The notes under the pieces are model-generated. The model saw only the letters and a list, made by a program, of their open reading frames with translations, was not told the origin of the DNA and made no database searches. Position numbers and translations under genes: made by a program. Shown piece after piece: positions 516 to 51,405 of a DNA stretch of 64,000 nucleotides (its first letter is position 1; every line of letters starts with the position of its first letter). Origin of the DNA: Lepidodermella squamata (lineage: Eukaryota; Animalia; Gastrotricha); contig JBLDXI010000058.1 in assembly GCA_047495785.1 (NCBI GenBank), positions 124,001-188,000 of the forward strand. Direction: 5' to 3'.

Positions 516-1323
516 AGAAATGGAAGAGCGCCGCGTCAGAGCCGCGGCGCAATCTGGAAGACAGATTGGAAGATTGGAAGATAGAGAGGGAAGAATAGAA
601 GGGAAGATAGAGATGGAAGAGGAAGAATTACGACTCCATTGTGTTGATTAATTGCGGCTGTGATTGTTGGTAGAGCCGACTCGAGCAATATTCATCGCCA
701 GCCGAGCAGAGAGGCAGGAGAGATCACACAGCAGGGGGAGCACAGGAGTTGGGGCGGGCAGGAAGAAGCCGAGCAGATCGCTGAGCGGCAAGCCCGCTGA
801 TTACCATTCGCCAGAGCCGGCGCGGCACTGTTGTTGACTCGTGAAATGGACCCTGACGACTCGGGCACTCGGCGCTTGCCGTGTAGCATTCCGCCGACTT
901 TTTTGTCGCGCCTGCAATCCGCGCGGAACCGAATGCATAATCGGCTATAGGCGGCCGCAGCAGCGACGACAATCTCGTCGTGATGACAAGACATGCCCTT
1001 GACTCACTACAACAGCGACACGACCAGGCAGTAAATGTGAGCGCAGCAAGCGTTATGTTTGCCTGCTATCTCTGCTGGCGGCGGCGGGCGCATCTCATTA
1101 ATCTCGCCCGAAACAACAAGGAGCCGCCCGCCTGCCCGTTCCAACAGCCGCCTTCATTTTGCTCATCCTACTCGGCATGAGAGCTGCTCTCTCACTCAAT
1201 GACCATTCTCCTAATACTTTGTCTCCGTGATTAGTATTCCAACATCATTTTGTATACCTAATTCACATATTTAGGTTATTTTCCTGCGTTATATGATGAT
1301 GCAGCTTTTGACGACTTGATCGA

Positions 1324-4300
1324 ATGGCTGCGACGGCTTTCGTTAAAGACGACTCGACGTCGAGTGGCAGCCAACTAACGGTGAGCAGCCTCGCCGAGTC
1401 TTACTTGCTGCGCGGCTCCGACGCCCTCCGTCGGCGCCATGCCGGTCTCACCGCCAATTTTTATCACCAAAACACCGAAAGTCATGAGACGCGCGCGCCC
1501 CGACCCGCAAACATGGGCGCTACACTGTCACCCGTCGTCGATGAGCCTGTGATTACAGCTGACAACTGCAGCTTGGCGACGACGTCCACAGCTCGCCGAC
1601 ACCATTCGCACCGTCACCGCCACTCGCACAAGTGCAGCCATCGGCATAGACGCCGCAGCGGAGGCGAGGCGGGCGACGAGACACAAACTACGTCACCTCC
1701 ACCGGTCGCACCAACGCCTCGGCCGCCGTCGTCGCCACCGTCGCTGCCCAGCTTCCGGCCCGGCAGCAGCACCAAACCCGGCGCCGATGACCGACCGGCG
1801 GACTCGGTTTCGGCAAACAACCGCCACGAGCGCGCAACGTCACCGACTTCGACCATTATCAGGTAGGAATCCAGGTTTAATGCGCCCTGAATAAATACCT
1901 GTCTTCCGCCGCGACCTCGCACAGCCATCCTGAATTACAACCCCATCCTCCTTATATGTTGCACTCGCTTTTGCCTCCAGTTTTTCGTTGAGTTTCATAC
2001 ATATATGTATTATTATTATTTGCTTATTGTTGCGAACACTCGTTAAAACGTGAATCGATTTGTTGATTCATGCGATCATCGAAAGAGCGGATGGCGGAAG
2101 ACTGGTCATCTTGGAAACGACGCTGTCGCTCCGTACCTTCTCTATTTGACAACGTTTCTCGTTTCAGTGATAATAGGAGCTACGCCAACTACGGCACCCG
2201 AGTGAATGGAGTCGGCAAGCTCAAACCAGCCACCTCTCAGCTGATACCATCGTCATCGTCACCGGCACCACCGGACCAAAATCGGCAATATCCGGTACTG
2301 TCACCTCCGAACGTACAATCAGCGTCGGTTTCGCCCATGTCTCCACTGAACGTAAACACCGACAAAACGGGTGTCGCGGCGCCATCGCCTCGGTCGAGAC
2401 AAAACGAGGCCACGACTGGTGGTGGTGATAAATTGCTGACAAGAAGCGACGCCGTTTTCAATCCTAGCAATAACTACATCAACAGCCTAACAGAATACTT
2501 CAGCAGACTGCAAGTGGCGGCAACGAATAACAGCACGCCTTCGAACTTGAACAACAACGACAAGTCGGCTTCAAATAATTTCAACAGCGAACTACCACCC
2601 AATCTTGCACCGCCCGGCACCCCGCCGTTTTATTGGCCGGGCGCTGCCTTTCTGGCAGCAGCCGCTGCGGCTGCGGCATCCCAGCCGCCTCCGACTGCAA
2701 CACCTACGGCGAACACTGGTGCCGAGGGTAACCTCCCATTTCCGCCATCTTTGTGGTACCCGCCACCGTTCTACCTCCCTTATCCACCCCAGACAGGTTT
2801 GCCTTGTTGAATTACCTTAATGAAAAGATTAAAAAATAAATTATTTTATAGGTTGGCCGCCTGCGCAACCCCCCAACGCAAATACCAACACAGCACCACA
2901 ACCACCGCCCGCGTCTTCTCAGCGACAGCAACACCAAGACCCGGTTGCAAAAATTACTAAATCGAATAGCAAGAACAACATTTCGGCTAAAGCCGCGCCG
3001 AGCAAACAGCCTCCATCAGACATGGGAGCTAGTGCAAGTGTAGGCAAGTTGATGTCGGCAACGCCCGTGAACTGCGTCGTTGCCAACATGGCATCGGAAC
3101 CGAAAGGCGAACTGGTGCGTTCGACGCACACAGCGTCAGTTAAAAAACGCGACCAAAGCCCGTTAGGAGCTAACAGATCGCCAAGCCGGCAGCAGCAACC
3201 GCAGCAAAGTGCGCCACCTCGATCTAAAACCGCGAATAACATCTCCTCAGTAGCAAGCAGCCTATGTGCCAAACCCCCGATCCCTCCCAAACCGCGGTTG
3301 CGGCAATCTGCCTCGCCGGTTGCGCCAAAGTTGACATCGCCTGCTGGTCCTCCAGGAAAGAAACCGGCGATGGCCGATGCATTTTCTCAAACGCTGTCAC
3401 CTGTACCTGGTGCCACCCCGACTTCGCCCTCAGTTGCTCCGTCTACGGTTACCTTGGTGAACCAAATGGAACGAGCTGATGCCGAGACGTTCAAAGACGA
3501 CTGGACCGTTGCCGAACCGACCCCGCCCGGATCGGAAAGCGGCGGTGACACTATGCACTTTTCGTCTTCCTACTGCAGCCAATTGATGTGGGAGCCACGT
3601 AAGGCAAAGACTGGCGTTACCGAGTCCTCCGAGTCGTGCTTACCTGGTAAGCGCCGCTCATCCAATGTCGAAGACACATGCCCTGACTGCGAGTCCGAGA
3701 AACCACACCAGAAGAGCCCATCGCGCCAGAAACCAAGTCGGGCGCCTTCTAGGGCGACTGCGAAAACTCCGCCGTGTTTGTCACCGCCGGCGGTTAAGGA
3801 TGAAACAGGGATCAAATCCCCATCTCAACAGCAGCAGCAACAAGAAAATTCAATAGCATCGCATTCGATTAAAATTTCAATAGATGGCGTCACGCCTCCG
3901 CCTGTCCGCAAGGTTTTCGCCGCAAACTTGAAAGCTATGAAAGCAGCCAAAAAGTCGCCGAGCAGTCTCGACAACGACGAGCCGGCTGAACGTGATGCGA
4001 CGTTCGATGTCGAAAGCCAGGGAGTTGTCGTCACTACGAAATCGAGTGCGAATAATAAGCAGAGGACAGATTCAAGTTCACACACAAAACCAACTACGAA
4101 CAAAAAACCAGCTAAATACAACACGATCGATCGCACTTTTTTCCGATCACGCGAAGAGTACGAAGAGTTTGCGGCTGCTGTAAAAAATGCAGCGGCGGTC
4201 ATGTCGACAATGCGCCGTCGCAATGGCTCGAAATGGTTCGCAGGGTTGCCCGATGACGCAGAAACCAGAGCTAGTGCCGAGTCGGAGCCGAGATCACGCC

Positions 4301-14536: not shown

Positions 14537-15190
14537 TTATTCAAGGATGGGCAGGGGCAGGATCGATCGCTCGACAAGTGCTCGCCAACAAATAGCAACT
14601 GCCTCAACGTCGAATTCAGCATTGTGCCATGGAGGAGTTATAGTTTGGGCTTCGTTTGTTGGGAAAAGCAGAGAGTAAAGCTCCTCAAGCTTCGGTCTCT
14701 TATAAGAACTAGTGTTCCAGAATGAAGGGACGTAATCGTCCGGGAAGGGCAGTCCACAGAAATCAACAACTCGCTGATCGCGGCACGTGTCAACAACGAC
14801 TTTCTTTCTGAACAGGTTTATTTCCTTCAACAGCTTGCACCGGAACATTTCACACCTGATCACCTTGACGTCGAAGGATTTTACGTTGTGACCGATCAGA
14901 TGCGTGCATTTGACTAGTGCTTTTGAGAACTCTTGAAGAATCGTTTTGAGATCCTCGCCATCCGCCAGAGCTACAGTTTGGTCCACGCCGTGGAAATCAC
15001 TGTTGTCGATAACAAAGCCAACGGGTTTGATTATCGCTTGCCGGCACTCGATCGTGTCGCCATCAGCATCGTCGAGACGCCAAGCAAATTGCACAATGCG
15101 CGGCCAAAAGTCCGTCTTCTTGTATCCCACGTTCGGACTTGGTCTGTTCCGCGAAATACGGGTTGTCTCCACGTCCAGAAATAGAATCAT
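14537..15190 (-). CDS. DnaQ-like DEDDh 3'-5' exonuclease, copy 1 (intronless)
   Basis: ExoI FLDVETT, WPRIVQFAW, HG, ExoII GHNVKSFD, PKLEEL, ExoIII WHNAEFD. Confidence 0.85.
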   Translation of the reverse strand: MILFLDVETTRISRNRPSPNVGYKKTDFWPRIVQFAWRLDDADGDTIECRQAIIKPVGFVIDNSDFHGVDQTVALADGEDLKTILQEFSKALVKCTHLIGHNVKSFDVKVIRCEMFRCKLLKEINLFRKKVVVDTCRDQRVVDFCGLPFPDDYVPSFWNTSSYKRPKLEELYSLLFPTNEAQTITPPWHNAEFDVEAVAICWRALVERSILPLPILE

Positions 15191-15238
15191 GACTGGATTT
15201 TCTAATAATTATCTGACTGGATTTTCTAATAATTATCT
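15191..15238. repeat. 24-bp perfect tandem duplication directly upstream of the exonuclease copy 1 ATG
   Basis: GACTGGATTTTCTAATAATTATCT twice; single diverged counterpart upstream of copy 2. Confidence 0.9.
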
Positions 15239-16707
15239 GAAGCCTTAAAATTGAAAACAATTGGGGGCGCTGCCTTTAAGCCTTAAGCACTCAGCAGCCA
15301 TATAACACAGGTGCGATTTACGACCTTTTGCCTACTTGATGCCTACTATCGCCTGAGTAATAAGACATACCTATAGGGCTTTGTTCAAGCTATATATATT
15401 AAATAAAGTTTTATATAAAAATGTATTGAAGTATAACGCTTGAGTACAGTCTCAGGTCTGAGGTGTTAATGGGCATGAAGTTATAATTCGCACAGGCGTT
15501 CTACGGCTGCATGTATAACATTAGATGTATAGCATTAGATGGGCGAAACTCGAACAGTTCGAGCGAAAGCTGTGTTTGCCAGGAGCGGCTTGATTGCTCA
15601 TATTATAGCGTCATTAGCAGCCAGAAAATGTGCCATTTGAACAAATTCAAATGACCGAGAGAAACTAAAATAGCGTATTTGAAGTGCGAAACCGATTCAA
15701 ATTTGGGTTATCTGTTGGAATGTAACATGTTAGTTGTTTTTTTCTGCCGATTTATTGATACCATCAATACTATAATGTATTATAATGTATCAATATTAGA
15801 AAAATAAATTAGTCATGACCACTCCTATGCTGCTTATATGGCTTATTTAACCAACAATTATAAACTACTAGCGAGTGCCCGAATGGTATATAGTATATAT
15901 AGGTATAAATGGCGCATCATTTTTCCGGTCGAACTTGGGAAACCGGACTTCACTGGAACCGACGTAGAAAACTGGGTAAGACAAATTCAATTTTGAAAAA
16001 ACATGTAAATGACATATTATCTCCCGTTGTGACGTTATCTTGTATGAAGCTGTATTATTCATATTATACTGTATTATTCATATTGAGGTTTAATATGAAT
16101 AATGTTATGGAAATGGGCGGCTCCTTTTAAACCCAACGCAAAATGATTACTTACGAATTCCGGCAAGAAAGTGGGTCCTAGGTATGGTCCTATTGAATTT
16201 GAAACTGCTTCGTTTCTGTTGTACTCTGCGAAAGTAAACTAATGTGCAGTGATTACAAGTACAAGTACGATTATACAAGCGACGAGCGCACTATTAAGTG
16301 CGTGCAGCCCCCTTTAAGTAAAACGGATTTCGGCAATCTCGGATACCCAAGCTGTTCACCTTGGTGATCCGTGCCCTACTTTCTAACCCATGAAGCGACA
16401 GAATGGCTCGGTGATACGGGCGAAGTCTGACATGCGAAGCCGCAAAAATTTCGCTGCTGGCCACTCCCCGGATAGGTATAATTCAATTTCAAACGACATT
16501 CTAAACGAGAAAAGGCAGATAGCTGATTCAGTGGTCTTTTATTAATTTTTTAACAATGGCAGCAGATGGTGTTTATCGAAACATGGAAATAATCAAATAG
16601 AAATCACTGCATTTTGAGTAATATTTGCAATCAAATTTTGAAATTATTTCAACAAAGCGTTTTTCATTTGATATTTGGTTCGGCAGAAAGTGACCTCACG
16701 CCTCAAT

Positions 16708-17355
16708 TTATTCAAGAAAGAGCAGGATTGAACGCTCGACAAGTGCTCGCCAACAAACGGCAACCGCATCAACGTCGAATTGAGAAGTGTGCCATCGAAG
16801 AGTTTCATTTTGGGCTTCGTTTGTTGGGAAAAGCAGAGCGTAAAGCTCCTCAAGCTTCGGTTTCTTGTACGCATCAGTGTTCCAAAATGCAGGGACGTAA
16901 TCGTCCGGGAAGGGCAATCTACAGAAATCAACGACTCGCGGATCGCGACACGTGTCAACAACGACTTTCTTTTTGAACAGGTTTATTTCCTTCAACAGCT
17001 TGCACCGGAACATTTCACACTTGATCACCTTGATGTCGAAGGATTTTACGTTGTGACCGATCAGATGCGTGCATTTGACTAGTGCTTTTGAGAACTCCTG
17101 AAGAATCGTTTTGAGATCCTCGCCATCAGCCAGAGCTACAGTTTGGTCCACGCCGTGGAAATCACCGTTGTCGATAACAAAACCATCGGGTTTGATGATC
17201 GCTTGCCGACGCTCGATCATGCAACCATCAGCATCGTCGAGACGCCAAGAAAATTGGACGACATGGGGCCAAAAATCTGTATTCTTGAATCCCACATTGG
17301 GGCAAGGTCTCTCCGACGGTATGTTGGTCGTCTCCACATCCAGAAATAGAAACAT
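16708..17355 (-). CDS. DnaQ-like DEDDh 3'-5' exonuclease, copy 2 (intronless)
   Basis: ATG at 17355 (MFLFLDVETT), GHNVKSFD, WHTSQFD. Close paralogue of copy 1, including several hundred bp of 3' flank. Confidence 0.85.
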   Translation of the reverse strand: MFLFLDVETTNIPSERPCPNVGFKNTDFWPHVVQFSWRLDDADGCMIERRQAIIKPDGFVIDNGDFHGVDQTVALADGEDLKTILQEFSKALVKCTHLIGHNVKSFDIKVIKCEMFRCKLLKEINLFKKKVVVDTCRDPRVVDFCRLPFPDDYVPAFWNTDAYKKPKLEELYALLFPTNEAQNETLRWHTSQFDVDAVAVCWRALVERSILLFLE

Positions 17356-17935
17356 GTCAGGTTTTTCTAATAATTTTCGGATGGAGCCTATAAAATAGAT
17401 AGGGCTGATATAATTGCCAAATGACCTGAGAAGTAGAGAAAAGAAGATGAAGATGATTTCGCACGAATTTCGGCTAGAAAGAAACAAATTTCATGTTTCT
17501 TAAGTTCTTGTTAAATTTTGTTCCACCAAGTCAGTCCAACCGCCATATACGCTCTTTCAAATATTTTATAACCTATAACCGTCAACGGCTGCTTCAAATG
17601 ATTTCAAATGAAAGGACTAATATAAGCCGAGAAAAAACTGCGCGAGTGGCGATTTCAACCGGCACGATAGGTTTAAACGCGAACCGTTGTGCGCGGAAAT
17701 GAAATTTACAGTTCGCAACATGGGCTGCGCATCAATGAGAAGTTAACAGCGAAAAATACGCCGTTGCCTTTTATAATACCGTCATGATGAAACTTATTAC
17801 GGGAAACAAAACAGCCAGCCTCTCGTCATATTATCATCTTTATTTCGCGCAAAATAAGTTTGACAGGCGCGAAAAATGATTTACTTGTTGAGTTTTCATC
17901 ATCATCATCATCATCTACATCAGTTTTCACAATTT

Positions 17936-18574
17936 TTAGAGTTTCTGTATGATTCGAATTTCAATGAGCTTCTGAACACACTCGGCGATTGCTTCAACAT
18001 CGAACTCCGCGTTGTTCCACGAGCATGGTTTAGCACTACCAGGAAAGAGAGCAGCATACAGCTCTTCGAGCTTCGGCCATTTGTACTTTTTCTTGCTGTC
18101 CCACAGTGGGCTGTAGTCCTTAATAGGGAAAGGCAGTCGGCAAAAATTGACAACACGCTTGTCAATGCACGGATCGATGATTGCTTTCCGCCTGAAGTAA
18201 TTGACTTGGCTCAGCAGTCGGCAGCGGTACATTTCGCATTTAACAACTTTGATGTGGAATTTTTGGATGCTGTGTCCGATCACATGCGTGCTTGATTTTA
18301 GAGCCTTCGAAAAATCCTGGAGAACCATCGTTAAATCCTCGCCGGAGTTCAAAGCTTTCTGTTGGCTGATACCGTGACGTTCGCAATTATCGATGACGAA
18401 ATCGACTGGCTTGATGATTGCATTTCTTCGTTCAACCGTGTGGCCGTTGGCATCGTCAAGTCGCCATGCAATTTGAACGATGCGCGGCCAGTAGTCCGTT
18501 CTCGTGTAGCCGACGTTACCGCCCGGCTTGATTGGAGAAACTTTAGTGGATTCCACGTCGAAGTACAAGTGCAT
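17936..18574 (-). CDS. DnaQ-like exonuclease, copy 3 (diverged, catalytic residues altered)
   Basis: ATG at 18574 (MHLYFDVEST), WPRIVQIAW. ExoII reads GHSIQKFH (D to H) and ExoIII reads WNNAEFD (H to N). Confidence 0.8.
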   Translation of the reverse strand: MHLYFDVESTKVSPIKPGGNVGYTRTDYWPRIVQIAWRLDDANGHTVERRNAIIKPVDFVIDNCERHGISQQKALNSGEDLTMVLQDFSKALKSSTHVIGHSIQKFHIKVVKCEMYRCRLLSQVNYFRRKAIIDPCIDKRVVNFCRLPFPIKDYSPLWDSKKKYKWPKLEELYAALFPGSAKPCSWNNAEFDVEAIAECVQKLIEIRIIQKL

Positions 18575-20214
18575 TTTTATTATAGATGTTTCTGTATAAG
18601 TCAATTTCTATCCGACGAAGAACGGCATTTCAACAAAAATGAAGCGAAGCCACCTGAAAGTCATCATTAGCCTTGATTTGCTAACACGATCATCAGCTGG
18701 ATCATCAGCTTCAACCAGGTAAATTTCGAAGCAATACAAAGAAAAAGAGATAGAAAAACGGAAAAATTAATAATTTGGGCAGAGCGAAGAGCGTGAAAGA
18801 GGTTATCAGCGCAATTATGCGAGTTCACGACGACGAGAATGATGAAAAAAATAAAGCCGAACGCACATGACCGTCTATTTCTTGATGAATCAAGCGCCGC
18901 CAAGCGGATGAGGGAAATGTACAAAAATGACAACACGCGCGTTTTATTGCTTGGAACATGATTGAAAGAATCACCAAGATTACACAGTGGTAAATAAAAG
19001 TTGTGTGTATCAAATTCGAAACCGACACGAAAGGTCCCATTGTCCAAATTTCGCAATGATTACAGAAGACGATTATTACGTGCATGGTTGCATTACACAA
19101 TTTGGCTCGATTTTTTTCGAATGTTTCGCAGGTTTCGCAGGTTGCAGTTGAACGAAGACTTCAGTTCAGAAATGAGATCCGATGAGCAATTTCGGTACTA
19201 TCATCTCTTTTTCTTAGTTGCTTGAAAAAGCAACAGCAGCCGCATAATCATCATAACGCAACAACTTACCGTAATTTGGGATGACTTTGACATGTCAAAA
19301 AGGGTGACTGGCCACTCAAATATCGAAGCCGGCAACCCCATGAGTGAGATACCGCCGGATAGCTCAAGCAATGCCAGGCCTAGATGTGTTGAATGTACAC
19401 CAATCCGACTTATTAAAATCCGAATTATTAAAATGGCAGGTAAAGTTACGGGGAAAATTAAAAAAAAGTTCGATTTCCGGTAGAATTAGGGTGACTAACC
19501 AAAGAAATCCATGCGATCAAAGTCGAAATCGAATGTCATTTTCGAACCACGCTGCTTACTGGCTATCAAACGGTAGCCCACCCATGGGGCCTTTACCATA
19601 TCGGCTTCGATATTTGAGTGGTTCAAAGTCACGCCATCAACATCTAACGCGTTTCGGGTGACTTTGACGTTTGACCACCGTTACCTGTCCACTACAATTC
19701 ATGCTTGTACCTGATAGTTACTTTGACTGTACTATCTGTTTCTACTTGTTACTGGCTTGCCGGCGACATCCATATTGAGGGGGTTAGCTCGTCAATTTGC
19801 GAAGATTTTATTTACCTATTGAAAGTCGATGGCAAAAACCTATGCTAATGTCACACAAACTTACACTACTTTATTTGACGGGAAACACAACAGAAATACC
19901 TACTGTAGGTTAGGGTCATTTGGGCAAACCGAGGATTAAAAATCAGACTTAATTCAAAATTTATAATATTTCAAACAAAGGTGTGTACGGTGATTTGCGA
20001 TTTGTTGATTGGTGATATTGCACATTTTACCTGATTTTTGACGGCCGAAAACAATTTTGCGTTAAGTTGGACGATTTCAGCGGTTAATTTTACACGCTCA
20101 TTTGCATACGGAATGGCAGTGTCAAATTTTGAAAAATTGTTCGGCGTTGCAAAGCTATTCATTCACCTGTCAAGCCGAAGTGTCCTTTTTCAGTGATAAC
20201 TGGGTGATAATTGG

Positions 20215-20599: not shown

Positions 20600-23500
20600 T
20601 TAAATCTTGTTGAAGGCAGCAACGTCGACGCTTTGACAGTAATCCTGTGAAAATACATAATTGACGACTCCGAAAAGTAAGATGAAACATTAGATACCTC
20701 GAAGCTTTCGATCTTCTCAGAGAGTGCATCGATCGAAACCTTCTCGTCCTCAACAACGCATCCGATTTGCAACTTCTTGATACCGAAGGCGACGGGAACG
20801 AATTTCGAGGCGCCCCTAACACATAAAAACGCTCAAAAATGACATCAATATGCACGTGTGGATTGTTCTTACCAGAGGAGACCGTCCATCTCAATGGAAC
20901 GAACAGCCTTCTCCATGGCCTCGATATCTAGAAAGAAGAAATAAATCATTATTCATGTTCAAGATTACAACATGTTGCAGCAATACAAATTGTCAATTTA
21001 CTACCCACCCAAAATATTGTTATCGGATGCGGATATGGTCCATATATCACCCAACGGTAATCTGAGGCGATTTTTATGCACATGATCGTGTCCTAGGTAC
21101 AACCGGGAGACCCGATGCAAGCGGTGCCAAACTAGTCAGCCACCTATACAACTTGAATATTAAGCTACTCTCGCAAGGCGAGCACACCTATACTATTAGG
21201 AAAGGCAGGAAAGAGTGCCTGGACCTGTTCATCGCCGGTGGTAAAGCCGCAAAACGTGCAACTGCTGTCGAAGTTCTACCGGATATCGGCCCGGATATCG
21301 GATCACATGAAAATCGAGCTGTTCTGTCAAGCGATCGAGCGCGATTGCAGTAAGCTGGATACGTCAGACCTGCATGTAGTCGCCGATATTGACAGAGCAG
21401 TCGAAAAGCTCGAATCTGTCATTATCACCGCTACTAATGCCACAACACCACGATGCGATGCGAGTAAACTCAAGGGCTGGCGAATAACTTCCGAAATATT
21501 AGCGGCAATCAAGGAAAGGCGGCGAGCGAGAAGAACAATGGAACGGTTCCGTACGGCAGTTTGGCGGAATCGTTACAATGCGGCTTGTAAACGAGTTCGG
21601 TATCTCATCGCAAAAGAACGATCCGACAAGTTCAAAAGACGACGTACAGAATTGTCGAAGATGCTCCACGATAAGCCACGGCTATTCTGGAAAGAGTTCA
21701 ACGCGCTAGCAAACAACTCGGCCGCTTCAAACCAGCGCCAATATCCGCCAATCACAAGCGATCACGGCCTCGAAACCTTCACCAACCCAGGCAAGGCAAA
21801 GATCTTCGCCGACCACCTCGAAAGTGTGTGGAAAACGCCCAGTGATCCTAGTTTCTGCAAAGGAACGGAGGAACTGGTCGAAAGAACGCTAAAAAATTAC
21901 GGCCACGAAATCGGACGTCCCGTCAACCCAAGGCGTGACAGGTCCGGCCGCTGGACAGCGAAAACCAACGAAGTGTTAACAATAGTAAAGAAATTGAAAA
22001 GTACGGCGCCAGGCGAAGACGGCATTCTAAATGCAGTCTTGAAAAGAGCCTCTGGGCGAAAGCTACCGACGTCTTCAACGCTTGCTTGCGGTATAGCTAC
22101 ATGCCGAGAAGGTGGAAGAAGGCAATCGTCGTCCTTATTCCAAAAGAAGGAAAAGATTGGCGAACGCCATAAGGATACCGCCCGATCAGCTTTCTCAACT
22201 GTATCGGAAAAATACTCGAGCGCCTAGTCGCAAGGCGGGTGATTGACGAAATGCGGGAACGCAAAATAATGCCGCCCAGTCAATCCGCTTTCCAAAATCG
22301 TCACTCAGTCGAGGACCATCCTCATCGAATAGTACAACTGGCCATAACTGGTCTTCGAGACCATGAAGAAACCTACGTTTCGTGCCTCGATATCGAAGGT
22401 GCCTTTGACCGCATCTGGCAACGAGCAGTAATTTACAAGCTACTCAATTTCGGCTTCCCTGACATCGCGACGGCGTGGATTGCGGATTTCCTCACCGACC
22501 GCGAATTCAGCTGCCGGGTAGGCAACGACCATAGTAGCGTAAGGCAAATCACCGGCGGGGTTCCGCAAGGTTCACATCTGAGTCCGATACTGTACGTTCT
22601 GTATACGGCCGACCTACCGCGTGACCTGCCGAAATCGGTGGCTAACTGCCTATTTGCCGATGACGTCGCTCTAATCTCGAAAAATAAGAAAGGCGAGGTT
22701 GCCCGCGCCAACCTTAATGACGGTATGTCAAAAGTCTCAGAATACTTCAAGAAATGGCGCCTCAAAGCGAATGCCGGGAAGAGCCAAGCGATTCGAATTT
22801 CGAATAAGTCAAAACCGCCTGAGTCAGCCATTAAGTTGGATAACACCGAGTTGAAGTGGCAAAACGAGGTGAAATACTTGGGCGTCACAATTGACTCGAA
22901 GCTGCTATTCAAAAAGTAAATCGACTTGGCTATCGCAACGGCGGCGCAACGTATCGTGGCGCTGCATGCTGTCTGTCGCAGGAGTTTCGGCCTCACCAAA
23001 GAAGCGGCCGTAACCGTGTACAAAGCGTACATTAGAAGCGTACTAATCTTTGGCAGCCCGGCATGGGTCGGTATCGACAGTGGGCTCTGGCAAAAGCTCG
23101 AGGTCATTCAGAACCAGGCGCTCCGAATCGCCATGCGACTTCCGCCTTGGCACAACACTGACGACCTTCGTAAAAGGGCAGGCATCGAGTCGATTCGAGA
23201 TCATGCTACCAGGCTTGCAACGAATTGGTCAAATCGATCGTTAACTTACGACAACCTCGTCGGGAAGGAGAGTGCTATTCTCATGCGAAAGCCTATTGAT
23301 GAACGAGTGTACCGACACTCGAAACGACCGCCTCTTTCAGCCATGCGGCTAGTACTAGATGGTCGACGTCCGTAATTAACACTAGTTTACTTTTTACATA
23401 AACAACACTAGCCTGTTCAACCAGCAAACACCTGAGCTTAACTGGCCCTCGACTTGGGCTTCTCACAGGCCCGGCTGGTCCTCTACTCGGGTGGTTTTTA

Positions 23501-24448: not shown

Positions 24449-24536
24449 TTTTGCCTTCAACTAATTTAAAGTGCCTATCAAATCATAGTTATAATAAAAT
24501 CTATTGTATAATATTGTTTATGCAAATCAAAAACAA

Positions 24537-42421: not shown

Positions 42422-43537
42422 GTCATTTCAAGCAAAATCGGAGACCGAGTTCCCTCACTGTACGTGTGTACATCCTCTTACAGCCCTACAGCCTAGAAAC
42501 CCAACAGCTTATGGTACCCTTCATTCATGACAATAAAACTGTGGAAAATTATTCTTGTCGTCGGTAAACATAGAAATAGTAAGAAAAATAACTTGTAATT
42601 TGGTTATTATATAAGTTTCGCGGCCATATTTGAATCTTACCGCGAATTTTTTTCATACGCATGCCGCTCTTTTGCTGGATGCTGACGAGCATTTGTAAAA
42701 CGTGTAGCGTTTAGCTAACACCTACTACGCCGGATTCGGAATTTTCTTGGTTTTTTAGTTCTCTCACATCTGTCATTACTTTAGAAATGCTTCCCATGAT
42801 TAGATCGTAGATTTTCGTTGTGGATTTTTTCCTATTCCGGTGCCAAATGGCGTTTGGCCATCTTAACACGCAGATCGCAGATCGTAATATGAGTCATTTT
42901 GTTTTGGTATTTGTGTTTTCTTGTCGCCATGATCTATAGCTGTTGTGGCCGGTTGCCTCTATTGATAAAAGCAATTTAGATCTCTCTTGATCCACAGTTG
43001 TGTTGATAGAACTCATGCTGAAAGCTGACATCTTGGCATGTTATAACGCCCAGACATTGATGCTTTCTACCTTGTGCATCCATCATGCCACCACTGACTG
43101 ACGTGCATTATAAACCGCCAACTGCTATCTACTAGTACAATTTTTTGTTCGGTTTTTGAGATATAGGTAACCAATGGTTACCAAGGTTACCAATTGTGTC
43201 GTTGTAATATGTGTCAGTGATCAGTGATACTATATTGCTTGGAGCCTTGAACGTGAAGCCTTGAAGTAGAGCTACTAATTCTTTATTTTGTGAAGGCTTA
43301 TGATCTATAATGTGTTTATTTAGTCATTCAAAAGCTTAAGCCCAGAATGAAAGCTCGTTGTAGAGTTGTCGAGTGCATGTAAAGTCGGCAGAAGATAAAT
43401 CAGAGTCGAAGTAGGTGGTTGCTTTTACTTTGGTTACTCTTACCATTTTACCATTACCATGATGCTACCATCTTGTTCTCTAAAATTTGTTCTCTACGAA
43501 CCATTTCTAGTTAATATATTATATAATTTCGATCAAA

Positions 43538-44394
43538 ATGACCAACTTCGGCGATTTGAAGACTATGGATGGCATGCGTTCCCTGAACGAATACCTCGCA
43601 ACACGCAGCTATATTGAGGGGTAAATTTTTGGGTCTTCAACTCACTCGGAACCAGAACTTGTTTGTAATCTCAGATTTTCCCTGAGCGATGCTGATAAGA
43701 AAACCCTCGCCCAACTGAGCTCAGCACCACCAGCTGAGCTCTACCATGCCCTGCGCTGGTACAACCACATCCGCATCCTAACCGGCGGTGCTCCGGCTCC
43801 GGCCGCCGCTGCGAAAGCTGCCGCGCCTGCTGCGGAGGAGGATTTCGAGCTGTTCGGCGACGAGGATGCCCCGGAAGACCCCGAGGCAGCCAAGGTCCGC
43901 GAACAGCGCCTGGCTGACTACGCCGCGAAAAAGGCGAAGAAGCCCGCGCTCATCGCCAAGTCATCTGTCGTCCTCGATGTCAAGCCGTGGGATGACGAAA
44001 CCGGTAAGTCTCTTTTGTAGCCGCAATTGCATAAATACTAATAAATTTTTCTTTCTAGATATCGAGGCCATGGAGAAGGCTGTTCGTTCCATCGAGATGG
44101 ACGGTCTCCTCTGGTAAGAACAATCCACATGTGCATATTGATGTCATTTTTGAGCGTTTTTATGTGTTAGGGGCGCCTCGAAATTCGTTCCCGTCGCCTT
44201 CGGTATCAAGAAGTTGCAAATCGGATGCGTTGTTGAGGACGAGAAGGTTTCGATCGATGCACTCTCTGAGAAAATCGAAAGCTTCGAGGTAACTAATGAT
44301 TTCATCTTACTTTTCGGGGTCGTCAATCAAGTTTTTTCACTCGATACAGGATTACTGTCAAAGCGTCGACGTCGCTGCTTTCAACAAAATTTGA
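43538..44394 (+). CDS. EEF1B2: Translation elongation factor 1-beta, paralogue B (5 exons)
   Basis: Exons 43538-43620, 43675-44003, 44059-44113, 44171-44288, 44350-44394. Same intron positions as paralogue A; intron 2 is only 55 nt. Confidence 0.92.
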
Positions 44395-45760
44395 ATACAT
44401 TAAACTCAAAACGCAAGGAAGAAGCAGATAATGTGAAAGATATAATGTTTATTGTATAATAAAATACTTGAAACGGTATACCAATCAGTTTCGACCTCTT
44501 ATTCATTTGAATGGATAACACCGACTCGTTATTTCGCGTGCTTGATTTATGCTTGGTACATTCGCGACATTTGCTGAACCGGAATTAACTAATTATAATG
44601 GAGGCGTCATAATAGCGGGAAAGTTACAAGCCAACCTTGACGAACAATCAGAGAGAACACAATAATTTAAACTGCTGATGATTGATTGAATGCAGTGAGT
44701 TGATTCTAATAATGAATCATGATTGTGAGCCTACGCATATGATAATCGTCGCCGATAGTATTCAATTTTCCAATATTGCCCCACGCAACGTGCACTTACG
44801 GGTATGGGCAAACATCAGAAGAAATGCCGACATTCAATTGGAGCTTCCGATCCTTCAGCATTTACCAGTCAATACAATCACACGTAATTCACGTAGCTCT
44901 TGTACATGAATTGCATTTTTTACGATTATGAATTTTACGTTTAAATCCACACTAAACCCAGCAGTACTTGACATTCAAGGCAAGCGGATCATTCGGACAT
45001 ACAATGTTTGCTCATTTGCCTTATTGGAATTAGTTTACCAATCCTCGTTTATTCTGAGGGGGCAGACATCGCGTTGGCTACTGTACAGTTTTTGGCCTTT
45101 AATGACGCGCCAGCGGTCGGCACTTTCTCGCCTACGAAAAGCTGTGATAATTGTCGCCTATAAATCATGTTTAATCCTTTTGTCAGCTATTGCCAATGAA
45201 GCAGATAGTAAACTTAATGCTTTACCAGCTTTGAATGACTGTTTAGGACACAGTTGGTTCCTAATTTGAACTGTTTTCGTAGTTAGAAACGGTGTTTCCT
45301 ATTTTTCGTTTCAATTCACCCACCTAAACGATTTAGTTTGGGAATATACAAGTTTATTGCGATCACCGATCAATGACGTCCATGCGGACGAAACGCCCAT
45401 GTTTTGTCGTTCAATGAATATATCCTAAGTTCAAGGGATTTTGCGGCCATTTCGCCTATGATGTACCATAGGTATCGATGAAAAGCTCATGCTAGATTTC
45501 ACTTGGTCATGTAAAAGTCACGTCAGACAGAAGCAATTAACTTTCCCACTCATCAAATTTCGGATTAAATGGCTCCTTCCTGTATTTAAGCCTTATTTTC
45601 CCAGCTCCTGATGTTTTCAATCGCGTTTTAATTATTTATCCTCGAAAGAGATTTAAGACGGTGTATTATTTTTTGTACTTTTTTCTGAATTTCGAACTTT
45701 TTCACGCACCAGTAATATTCAGGTCATATAGTTGTGATAGATTTATTAAAAATTGCTGAA

Positions 45761-46607
45761 ATGCTTCGAAGCTTGCTCGTCAGCTGGATTGGTTTGCTTT
45801 TGATAGTGGCGATTAAAGCAGAGGAGAAGGTGATGTGGGTTAGTTTTAACCTCCACTTACAAAATCGTCATTACATGAGTTTTTGGTCGCCGGTATAGGT
45901 TCACGAGCCCGAGGAGGACGATAGCCAACAGCTGTTGGAAGATGCTGCCGCCTCTTTGAACGATGACATCGAAGTCGCATCTAGGCGACGCCGAGATGCT
46001 AACGATAGGGACAGTGGACTGCAACTGTGTCTTTTGCCATCTGGTCAGCTGACAATCGTTCGAGAAGCCCGAGCGGTCGATACCCCACCAGCTTCTCCAA
46101 CTCATCAAGAGTCAGTAGAAAAAATCGGAATCACGAAACGTGCCAAATTTCTCGACTTTAAAAAGCGAGGTTTGTTACATATTATTCTAAGTTCTGAGAA
46201 TTAGTAAAGATTTCATTTTCACCTTCATAGCCAAGTACATAGACGTTTTCAAGCGAGCCAAGTTTATTGATTTCAACAAACGCGCTAAATTTATCGATTT
46301 TCGAAAGCGCGCCAAGTTTATTGATTTCCGAAAACGTGCCAAGTACATCGACGACCCGGCATTCCTCTTCGAAACTCGAGGCAATAATAATGTGGCTCTT
46401 CGAACTGGCCTTTCCAACTTGCCAGCCTACACTGTCTCGCCTGCTGCGAAATTCCATCTACGTCTTCGCAGTCGGTTATTTGGTTCAACTACGACACCCG
46501 TATCGAAGCGCGGCAACCAGCATAGCTACAGCATGTCGATGATTCAAGGAAATGGCGCCTACGTGAAGTGTATCCAATTGAAACCAGACCAACAACACGC
46601 TGTTTAA
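45761..46607 (+). CDS. Putative neuropeptide/prohormone precursor (238 aa) with AK[F/Y][I/L]D[F/V]x repeats
   Basis: Exons 45761-45829, 45899-46169, 46231-46607 total 717 nt in frame. Signal-peptide-like MLRSLLVSWIGLLLIVAIKA, acidic spacer, RRRR, then tandem KR-delimited heptapeptides. Confidence 0.8.
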
Positions 46608-47360
46608 CTATAAGTTAATCGCGGTATGCTGTATGATTGTCATTGTATCAAATTTCCGCAAAATGTCTGCATGAGAAGTAGTTTTTTTATACACACCTTG
46701 TTATTAGTAATCGTGATTATTTTCACGCATCACCACGATTGATAAATTTTTCGGAGAAGATGCGGCTGCATGCTCGAAAACCATGTTGAAAACGGCTAAT
46801 AAACGTGTTTAGATATGTGTGTGGAATCTTCTTGCGGCTTCGCTGCAATGCGATAATAAAATCAACACGGCGGCAATTACCAAGTGTTAAGTGTTGCATA
46901 AGTTTTAACGCTTGTAGCGCGTTGTGCAATTTTCCGCGCTGGGAATAGCGCGCGCCGCGCTTCAAAGAATATTTGACCCGGGCAACAGCTTATGAAAACA
47001 AGCGTTTCGGGTTTCGCTTGTCGATGATGATGATAAAACAACAAAAACAACGCCTCGAGTAGTCTCGTATTTGATAAGCATCTCAGCAGCCGTTTATTAT
47101 TTTCAACAATTAGTTGCAGAAAAGTAAAATACAGCATTGCTAACATGCAGAATAAATAAAGAAAACGGGCGCAAGTAATTCGACCCCAGCAAATTTTTTC
47201 TCGATGTAGAAATAAGTTGACTATAATATATCTAATGAAATTGCGCTAGCATTGATGGAACTTGGCTGCTACTGCTCACAAAAAGTTACAACAACAACAA
47301 CGCATCAATACTGAGATGACTAGAAATTGGCTGATTGGGTGGTGGAAAAATATGCAATCA

Positions 47361-49282
47361 TCAACAATCGGTGCCGGCGTATGAGGATGCCGAACCGGTG
47401 GCGGTCACCGCGCGCCCGCTCATCGACGACCAGGCTGGTGACGAATCGGTAGGTGATGTAGAGTTGGCAGCGCGTTTTGTTGATCCTGTCGAGCTGCCGC
47501 CGCCGCCGGAATTCGAGCCGGACTCCATGCGCCAAACTGAAAACGCCATGGAAAGGCGCTCATGCGCCAAAACAGCTGTGGAAGCGGACGCTGGAGGCGA
47601 GCTGACGGCCGGCGACAGCGATGAAGAGTCGGCAGAGGGAGCTTCCGAGTCAGCGGTGCGTAAAACTTGGAACAAAAAGTCGATGTAGCGCGTCGCCAAC
47701 TTTAGCGTTTGGATTTTGCTGAGTTTATCACTGAAAAAAAAGCAAAACAGATATTGCAATAATTCTTTACAAATAATTTAACGGCTGAAAATTACCTGGG
47801 AAGTGTTGGAATGATTTTCCGAAGCTGACTGAACGCGTCGTTTAGCGATTGAGTTCTCTGCCGTTCCCTGTGGATGACAACAAAAAAAACGAAATTAAAC
47901 ATATGCGCATTCTGAAAGGTATATCCACCACCATATTCCTACATTATTCTTATAAAAGAAGAGCCTGGCCCTGATGTCTAAATATGTATGCTATATTCTA
48001 TGTTTATATTCACCGATTATTGTCGCCAACTCGCGACGTCGACGTAGCTTGCATTGGGTGCGTGATCGGCGCGGGTACTTTGAATTTCGCTGCTTGAGTA
48101 TTGAATGATTGGTGTTGGTGTTGTTGGAGTTGCTGCGATTGCTGCCGCTGCTGGTGTCTGTGGACATTTTTGGGTGACAGTCATCATCAACATCAAATTG
48201 TCAGACTAATTATAGTAGCATCAGTCGCCTTATTGTGAATTAAAACTCAAATTGTTTGCCCGTGCACAATATATCAGAGCAAAATGAATAGCAACAAAAT
48301 ACAAAATAAGAGAACTCGGGCCAGGCTCTCGAATAGCGTAAAAAATAATGATTTAACCAGCCAAAGTCATGCAAATAATAATAAACAATTCATGCGATTT
48401 CTTAGCATTATTAGTTTTTTTTGAGAAATTCAGTACCAACCTGACATTAGCGAGAACACGTTGCTGACCGCCACCGTCGATCATCAGCGACGACGGCGAC
48501 AAAGCCGTAGATGGCGAAGGGTAAGATGCCAATATCGGTTTGGCTTCTAAAATCGTCTGCTGGCCGAAGGTAGACACGTCATTCGATTGAATAGGCGCCG
48601 ATTTTTTCACGCCACTGGCGGGCGGGCGCGACGCGGCTTGTTTGGCAACTGCTGCAGTGCTGGCATTTGCTGCAGACTTCGGCTGTTGGGCTTTAGCCTT
48701 TTTCGTCCCACCAATGCTTGGCAGGTGCTGATTGCTATCGGTACTAATTGAACCGGTGGCATTGCCGTAAAAAAGCGGCGAAGCGGAATCGGGATTGTTG
48801 TTTGACGACGCGAGCGGCCGTTTCCTGCCCGCCCCCGCACCGGCCCTGCTTGCTTGTCGTCGATTATTAGCAGCCGGCCGTTGTGTTTGCTGCTGCTGCT
48901 GCTGCTGTTGCGGCGCTGGGTGTTGCTGCTGTTGTTGTTGAGCTGTCAGCGCAGGTATAAAATTCGAGCTCTGCTTGACCGAAGCCGGCCACTGAGAATT
49001 GTTGTAAGATGACGATGACTGAAGCGGCGCCATGATGTAGGTCGAATTGCCGTAGTGCTGCGGCATCGGCTGCATGCCGGCGTGAAAGTTGGCGGCATTG
49101 TCGAAAGGAGCCGGGTAGGCGTGAAAAGCTGCCTGTTGCTGGGTGGGGTACATGGGCGTGAAGTGCTGCGCTTGGAACGCGTAGTTGTTGTAGGCTGGCG
49201 TGTTGTACGACGTCGAAGAGGCGTTGCTGGGCTGATGGAGCGGCATCGATGCGATGCTGAGTTGCTGTTCGGCCGTGGCCAT
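47361..49282 (-). CDS. twist: Twist bHLH transcription factor
   Basis: Exons 49282-48441, 47867-47796, 47730-47361 give [51 protein letters not shown] and the WR motif [13 protein letters not shown]. Confidence 0.93.
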
Positions 49283-51405
49283 CACTATCGGGCAAAAAAG
49301 CGATAACAACAAGTGCCTAGAAGCAAAATCAGCAGCACACAATTTTATGAAGCGCTATACACCGCTAGCGAGTTCATCGCGCGCGCTCACAAGGCAAACA
49401 CGGCGAGTCTGGTTCGAATTTCGGTGATTGGATTATTAGGAGTGGAATTATTGGGGGTTCTGCGGAAAGACGCGCCAATTCGAGCATTTAATCTAGCCAT
49501 AAATAAGAATGCAGTGTTATCTCCGGCAACGGCTTCTGGTTGCAGTTAGCGCCAAGACCGTTTTACGAGCCCAACAAACAGGTACCACTAGCGTGATCTC
49601 ATTAGCGCGCGCAGCAGGCCGTGAGGTGCACGGCCAAGCGTGATTTACTATGTAATATAACAACAGTTATCGCCGATGAACCGTTCCCTACACGGAGAAC
49701 GGCCGGCCGTATCGCGAGAGATGATCGCAACTTGTTACATTCCACTGCGCTGCTCTGCGCTGAAAAAACTAGCAATTATACTGGCCAAGCTTGAATGGGA
49801 AATAACGAGAGCGCGAGAGCCAGCGATTGCTGATTGGATGCGCTCGCCAGCCAATCACGGCTTAGCGTACCAGGAGATGATCGCGGAATTATTACACGTT
49901 ATTGCGCGTAATGCGGGCGGCTTTACAGCTAACAACAAGCCAATTACAGACGCATTCCGATTATTCCGAGTCATCTCGTCGGTTGTTTCGGCACTAATGC
50001 GCGAGGATGCTCGCTGGGCGCGGACGGGTCGCGCAAACACGAATTACGCGACGGCGCGTGCCTTTGCGCGAGGCTCACTTTTCGCGTTTTGGCGACCGGC
50101 CGTTAATTGCCGCGCGAGACGATCGTTTAGCCGATATTGACGGTCACTACCGCAGTTAATTTGCTTCAAGTTTAGCCGCCCTTGTACGCTTCCGACTTCA
50201 ATCATCAATTTATTTTAGATATATTGAGGTAATTAATATTGTCATCGTTTCAAGTATCAGCAGTCAAGCAAAAGCGTGATTTTCTTCAGCCGACAAAAAT
50301 GAGCACTTAGCTTAGTTATAGTTAGCATCGGTTGCACTTGAATTTGAAGTTCTTTATTCCCACTGCTTGAGATTTTCAGACAATAATTGCAACAAAATGC
50401 AACGAGATTGACGAGATAACGAATATCTATAGGCATCGTAAGAAATTTCCTTTCATTTCCAGTCATTTTTTTGACGAAAAACAATTGAGAATATGCGAAC
50501 ACCATAGAGAGCGAGAAAAACCTAAAATTACCTAAAATTTGGGAACTACATCCTTAATTATGTCATAATTTCAGTATGTGGACTTCAGCGTGTCCGTAAT
50601 TTTTCCTCGATTCCAATTAGTCAATTCTCAAGAAGGAACATTTTACATCATGGTTATAACCGCCATGGCTCTTCGAATTTTTGTTCCAACCATATGATGA
50701 GTAAAAAAAACTCATTTTTTGCATAGGGCCTGATCATCGAAAGAGCCCCACTAAACGGTGATGCCACATTTTGAAGCCATCTTGGCCCAATGGGCATTTC
50801 GTTTTAATGAACTGGCCTCTGGAAATTATAGAAAATGAGTAGCGGTATTTACGATATTATAGACAAACCTCATAAATGTAACGGCAACGTAAAGTATATT
50901 CGATCTGAAGGCAGCTTGTACATTTTGATACAATTTTACCTCGACTGTGAAAAACGATCGTTTCGATTTTCGCCTTTTTGCGCAGTGTACAAGTTTCAGC
51001 TTCCATGAAAAAGTTCAAGCTTTCAAGTCCCAACATTTCTACTTGCGCGCTGAAGTTTCTTAGTTTTTGAGTGAGCAGTCCGCCGAAGCCAGTTTGCTGT
51101 TGCCAGCCTTATAAAATTCTGTCTGCCAGCAGTAAAGTATTTTACGCCATTTGTGTGATTGGTTCGATTTCAACATTGGCCTGAATAATTCCAACAAGAA
51201 TTTCGTTCACAATAGCAATTTTATTGAAGAAACGACAAAAATATATAGTTGATTATACATAAATGATTAGCAGTTGAAAGAGGAATCGTTTTGTCTGAAT
51301 TCATTAGTCACCGATCACAACAATAATCCACAAATTGCACGTCAACAGCATGAAATAAATTAGCACGGTTGATTCAAGTAACTAGGCACAGCAGAGTATA
51401 TCACA

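Follow-up and report, generated by a model that had tools for sequence, protein, structure and literature searches.

A transcribed multi-copy peptide precursor gene of the gastrotrich Lepidodermella squamata and its probable relation to the spiralian AxxxDF neuropeptides

The stretch of Lepidodermella squamata DNA analysed here, called the window in the following, is 64,000 nucleotides long. At positions 45761–46607 of its plus strand lies a genuine, transcribed and spliced gene with three exons, which starts with an ATG at 45761 and ends with a stop codon at 46605–46607. The genome assembly of this species has been published (122 Mb, 157 contigs, 43% GC; PMC11660948), and the GC content of the window is mostly 40–50%. 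The neighbouring genes are of animal type, with a proteasome alpha-6 that is closest to vertebrate chains. Tail-to-tail with the peptide gene there is a twist-like bHLH gene on the minus strand (47361–47759 and 48353–49342), with an HLH match, a WR-like motif identified by eye and an RNA contig starting at 47136. A gene that by eye resembles elongation factor 1-beta is present in two copies, one at 43531–44400 (plus) and one at 24451–23949 and 20957–20599 (minus), which are 83% and 93% identical by blastn. The minus-strand copy is split by ca 3 kb containing frameshifted reverse-transcriptase ORFs (21238–23375; RVT_1, E 2e-32), apparently a non-LTR element within an intron. Further away, at 14537–18604 (minus), there are three tandem intronless ORFs of the DEDD/RNase T exonuclease type, the first of which matches PF00929.

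Three public sequencing runs, here called X1, X2 and X3, contain the stretch of interest and were mapped onto positions 44700–47250. Run X1 contains a SMART cDNA adapter and is limited to the exons, as expected for cDNA, and the same exon-only coverage is seen for X3, which comes from a different study. Run X2 is taken to be DNA, because its coverage includes introns and flanks. The RNA contigs cover 45814–46872, such that the start codon lies upstream of the covered part. The coding part of exon 1 (45761–45838, 26 codons) is supported by its hydropathy, by the RNA contig over 45814–45837 and by a similar hydrophobic first exon in the orthologue discussed below. It is followed by intron 1 (45839–45898, 60 nt, GT–AG, phase 0), exon 2 (45899–46169), intron 2 (46170–46230, 61 nt, GT–AG, phase 1) and the coding part of exon 3 (46231–46607), all on the plus strand, the last two exons being covered by the RNA contig. 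The 3' untranslated region extends over 46608–46872 and has AATAAA signals at 46798 and 46855; the contig ends at 46872, 17 bases past the second of them.

The original prediction had three in-frame exons with GT–AG introns, a first donor at 45829/45830 and a protein of 238 residues. Intron 2 agrees with the RNA, and the junction 46169/46231 is seen spliced in contigs of both X1 and X3, that is, in two studies. The first donor, however, has to be moved. The X1 RNA contig (depth 72, contig depth being a poor measure of expression level) reads on past 45829/45830 and then skips 45839–45898, which puts the end of exon 1 at 45838 and adds three codons, for a protein of 241 residues. The junction seen is thus 45838/45899 and not 45829/45899. 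A minor isoform using the upstream donor is still conceivable, because contigs drop rare variants.

We now turn to the layout of the encoded protein. The N-terminus contains a hydrophobic stretch with a 9-residue hydropathy of up to 3.4 and, judged by eye, has the n/h/c arrangement of a signal peptide in both species, with cleavage likely after Ala20. Exon 2 encodes an acidic spacer, a furin/convertase-type RRRR site (45983–45994) that is absent from the orthologue, a conserved segment QLCLL..G.L..VR (46022–46063) with a single cysteine at 46028–46030, and the first peptide copy. The remaining five copies are encoded by exon 3, together with a C-terminal spacer and a cysteine-bearing tail. When the sequence was re-read, the signal-like N-terminus, the acidic spacer and the RRRR site were all found where they had been described.

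The predicted peptides are AKFLDF (46142–46159), with KR upstream and KKR downstream, (A)KYIDVF (46233–46250), whose alanine codon is split by intron 2, AKFIDFN (46257–46277), and two copies of AKFIDF (46284–46301 and 46311–46328), each followed by RKR. The last copy, AKYIDDPAFLF (46338–46370), is atypical. It has 9 of its 11 residues identical in the aligned orthologue, and its C-terminal end is uncertain, the next dibasic site being 56 residues from the start of the copy. After a conserved SKR site, a C-terminal product of 31 residues is predicted (46512–46604), which contains the conserved SMIQGNG...KC and a single cysteine at 46569–46571. The six KR-flanked peptides were described in the same way in the original prediction, including the lack of glycine before any KR; over the two species, none of the 11 copies, six here and five in the orthologue, has a glycine at that place. 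A search of all six reading frames finds the repeat motif nowhere else in the window.

The varied synonymous codons of the repeats had been read as a sign of selection on the peptide, and two kinds of data agree with this. First, among the five KRAKxxD units the mismatches amount to 0.06 at the first and at the second codon position, and to 0.57 at the third. Second, at least 13 exonic differences are listed between the X2 DNA (a run from 2024) and the window, and all 13 of those listed are at the third codon position, 12 of them silent and one changing Glu to Asp. If the positions were random, the probability of this outcome would be about 6e-7. The listed indels of X2 are confined to introns and flanks. 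When the codons of exon 3 were shuffled, a 4-mer occurring four times was obtained in 1 of 100,000 cases. The repeats are thus kept up as peptide and not as DNA, and the gene is under purifying selection. A DNA satellite or a chance repeat was also considered and is ruled out by the third-position variation, the shuffling and the orthologue. As a separate observation, X2 presents a second haplotype over window positions 45226–46800, which differs from the first at many sites within introns and has both splice sites intact; around intron 1 there are 12 substitutions and 3 gaps across 151 bases.

The gene is conserved in a second species. With exon 3 as the query against 1.8 billion representative proteins, one convincing match was obtained, called P0001 (E 2e-10), which is encoded on two short ENA metagenome contigs (ERZ23486787 and ERZ27333047); a BLASTP comparison that includes the QLCLL segment gives E 4e-10 for the pair. 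The corresponding locus, L001, spans 652–1256. Its reading frame opens with the ATG at 652, the first exon is hydrophobic, and positions 709–776 form a phase-0 intron. An intron of this phase after the signal peptide is thus common to both genes, while the second intron is lacking in L001. Its source is inferred from the orthology to be another gastrotrich, and the presence of the gene on a metagenome contig means that a related animal was present in that sample. No shared upstream motif or synteny could be detected on the 2-kb orthologue contig.

The orthologue has five copies, namely AKFLDGIIT, AKFLDGVYF, AKFLDQGMM, AKFLDGVYM and one starting with AKYYDDPAMLF. What is kept in both species is the KR-AK[FY]xD core, the last copy, an LRLR block and the late SKR site. 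Two flanking segments are kept as well, each holding the sole cysteine of its part of the protein; the first, QLCLL..G.L..VR, precedes the repeats, and the second, SMIQGNG...KC, is C-terminal. For P0001, an AlphaFold model built on a three-row and partly misaligned alignment has a pLDDT of 51 and a pTM of 0.19. The cysteine segments are drawn as short strands in it, which in a model of such low confidence is a hint at most.

Taken as a prohormone, the protein would be handled by a well-known pathway, in which a signal peptide gives access to regulated secretion, the precursor is cut by PC1/PC2-type convertases, and the fragments are trimmed by carboxypeptidase E. Here, the signal peptide would route the precursor into this pathway, the convertases would cleave after KR, and the basic residues would be removed by the carboxypeptidase. 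The expected free-acid products would be AKFLDF, AKYIDVF, AKFIDFN, two AKFIDF and a longer one initiated by AKYIDDPAFLF. Once released, these peptides would act on a receptor, most likely a GPCR. Since the two species share AK[FY]xD and differ after the aspartate, it is probably the five N-terminal residues that the receptor recognizes. The two single-cysteine flanks, which enclose the repeats, probably form one disulfide that closes the precursor around them; this may serve as a sorting loop or be left after processing as a two-chain product. The earlier reading of the gene as a prohormone with a signal peptide, dibasic-flanked and non-amidated copies, and selection on the peptide is backed by the RNA, the polymorphism and the orthologue, and we consider it very likely that the gene encodes a processed peptide precursor.

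Database searches place the protein next to its orthologue and nothing else. Pfam contains no family for any exon or for the orthologue, and searches for homologous proteins within a length window, in which exon 3, the repeat part of exon 3 and P0001 served as queries, returned P0001 alone; neither these searches nor the one among the representative proteins gave a brachiopod or nemertean protein. The matches of exon 3 to Plasmodium, frog and bacterial repeat proteins were dismissed as weak similarities between repeats, with low identity. Two JGI metagenome scans gave pattern matches, none of them confirmed, and the ESM Atlas gave no usable match. In a full-text literature search, the sole match to AKFIDF was an unrelated laminin paper, and no mention of these peptides in any gastrotrich was found in the papers covered. 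No AKF-type peptide is among the entries listed in the parts of the mollusc and planarian catalogues that were available. PKYMDT/whitnin was considered and dropped, as we take it to be single-copy and to have a different cysteine layout.

The closest likeness is found among the AxxxDF (ASWLDF) proneuropeptides, which are non-amidated and have been reported from nemerteans and brachiopods only, as a lineage-specific innovation of these two groups without clear relatives (Thiel et al. 2021, PMC8557429). The precursors of the brachiopods Lingula anatina and Glottidia pyramidata have, after a signal peptide, tandem AKFNDF with variants AKFVDF and AKFFDF between KR sites (PMC8557429, supplement 1), while those of nemerteans have ASWLDF with variants ASWLDM and ASWIDT (PMC8557429). 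Spacer peptides are among the products of the Lineus precursor detected by mass spectrometry, meaning that it is processed; no receptor for the family is named there (PMC8557429). In the window gene, the AxxxDF motif is present in four of the six copies (AKFLDF, AKFIDFN and AKFIDF twice), and AKFIDF and AKFLDF are identical to the brachiopod peptides in 5 of 6 residues, both ends included. The rough chance of such an in-register match against 1000–3000 peptides, catalogue sizes that are assumed, is 0.2–0.5%, or 3–9% with a generous background. For the orthologue, the chance of its 4/5 match is 3–57%, which alone is not significant.

Compared at the level of peptide motifs, the gene is probably a gastrotrich member of the AxxxDF family by homology. 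For the full reading, that the three-exon gene is a neuropeptide precursor and the gastrotrich counterpart of this spiralian family, we estimate a probability of about 0.6. The earlier claim of an undescribed family is then probably wrong, a match to a described family having been named at the outset as what would remove the novelty.

The main alternative is a gastrotrich-specific and undescribed family of convertase-cut secreted peptides with the core AK[FY][ILY]D, in which case the likeness to AKFNDF would be convergent. In its favour, the orthologue keeps AKFxD and has no copy ending in DF (0 of 5). In addition, the published AxxxDF precursors do not show the best-conserved blocks, that is, the last copy and the two cysteine flanks, and there is no significant database match beyond the orthologue. 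However, the unit KR-AKFx-DF-(K/R)KR fits the brachiopod one, with a chance estimate of 0.2–9% over both backgrounds, and the AxxxDF family itself tolerates the loss of the final phenylalanine, as in ASWIDT of Cephalothrix and ASWLDM of two nemerteans (PMC8557429). We regard a separate family as a serious possibility, but a rather unlikely one.

Another option starts from the cysteines. One could think of an undescribed gastrotrich system independent of AxxxDF, in which the repeat block would be cut out and the single-cysteine flanks would stay joined by their disulfide. Its precursor would then supply two chains linked in this way besides the short AK[FY]xD peptides, an insulin-like processing topology with unrelated sequence. 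We find this proposal unlikely.

It is also conceivable that the protein is a secreted, processed precursor of a non-neural tissue, such as a gland, with a pheromonal or defensive role and the cysteine-linked flanks perhaps as the main product. This would be in line with the high depth of the whole-animal cDNA contig (165, again a poor measure of level) and with flanks that are as conserved as the repeats. However, the layout is typical of multi-copy neuropeptide precursors, a catalogued proneuropeptide is what it matches best, and AlphaFold predicts no confident fold for the orthologue. A non-neural origin seems very improbable.

Should the gene indeed be the gastrotrich member of AxxxDF, the family would extend to a third phylum. 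On trees that group gastrotrichs with flatworms, it would then be an older spiralian system that annelids and molluscs have lost or in which it has been overlooked so far. If the gene is not a member of AxxxDF, it would represent a lineage-specific family of the ordinary kind. Gastrotrich neuropeptides have barely been surveyed, and the comparison of two species points to AK[FY]xD as the residues that matter. Since a genome of L. squamata exists (PMC11660948), mapping the expression of this orphan family and matching it to a receptor are feasible. No new mechanism is involved, and the result will be of use to specialists in neuropeptide evolution.

Finally, the peptides can be compared with other known systems. 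The short multi-copy peptides AWDF and LWDY of acoelomorphs, confirmed by mass spectrometry (Thiel et al. 2018, PMC6188537), share the aspartate and the aromatic end with the window peptides. These are two residues only, however, and the acoelomorph peptides have a tryptophan directly ahead of the aspartate, no Lys-Phe, and come from a distant lineage. Phoronid LKFL (PMC8557429) shares the KR-x-KFL start and is partly non-amidated, but it has four residues, no aspartate and long acidic spacers between the copies. The original prediction named the amidated annelid FLamide as the nearest likeness, but the brachiopod AxxxDF peptides are far closer. A de-amidated, diverged precursor of this type is the least probable of the readings considered here: the FLamides (AKYFLamide) of Platynereis and Capitella and planarian NPP-22 (AKYFRLamide) do share the KR-AK-aromatic start and a multi-copy precursor, and phoronid LKFL precursors do combine amidated and free copies, but FLamide and NPP-22 peptides have an amidation signal (GKR) and a C-terminal FL or RL, whereas the copies here lack both a glycine before KR and such an end and have an invariant aspartate at position 5 that is absent from those families.

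With AxxxDF, the window gene has in common the signal peptide, multiple copies placed directly between KR sites and the lack of amidation, and its repeat unit equals the brachiopod one in start, length and end. The differences are the lower number of copies (six, and five in the orthologue), the extended or Tyr-type form of some of them, the missing final phenylalanine of the orthologue, and the single-cysteine flanks and conserved last copy, which have not been seen in the nemertean precursors that are complete; those of the brachiopods are C-terminally incomplete. What is already known is thus the AxxxDF family, and what is new is, probably, its gastrotrich member.
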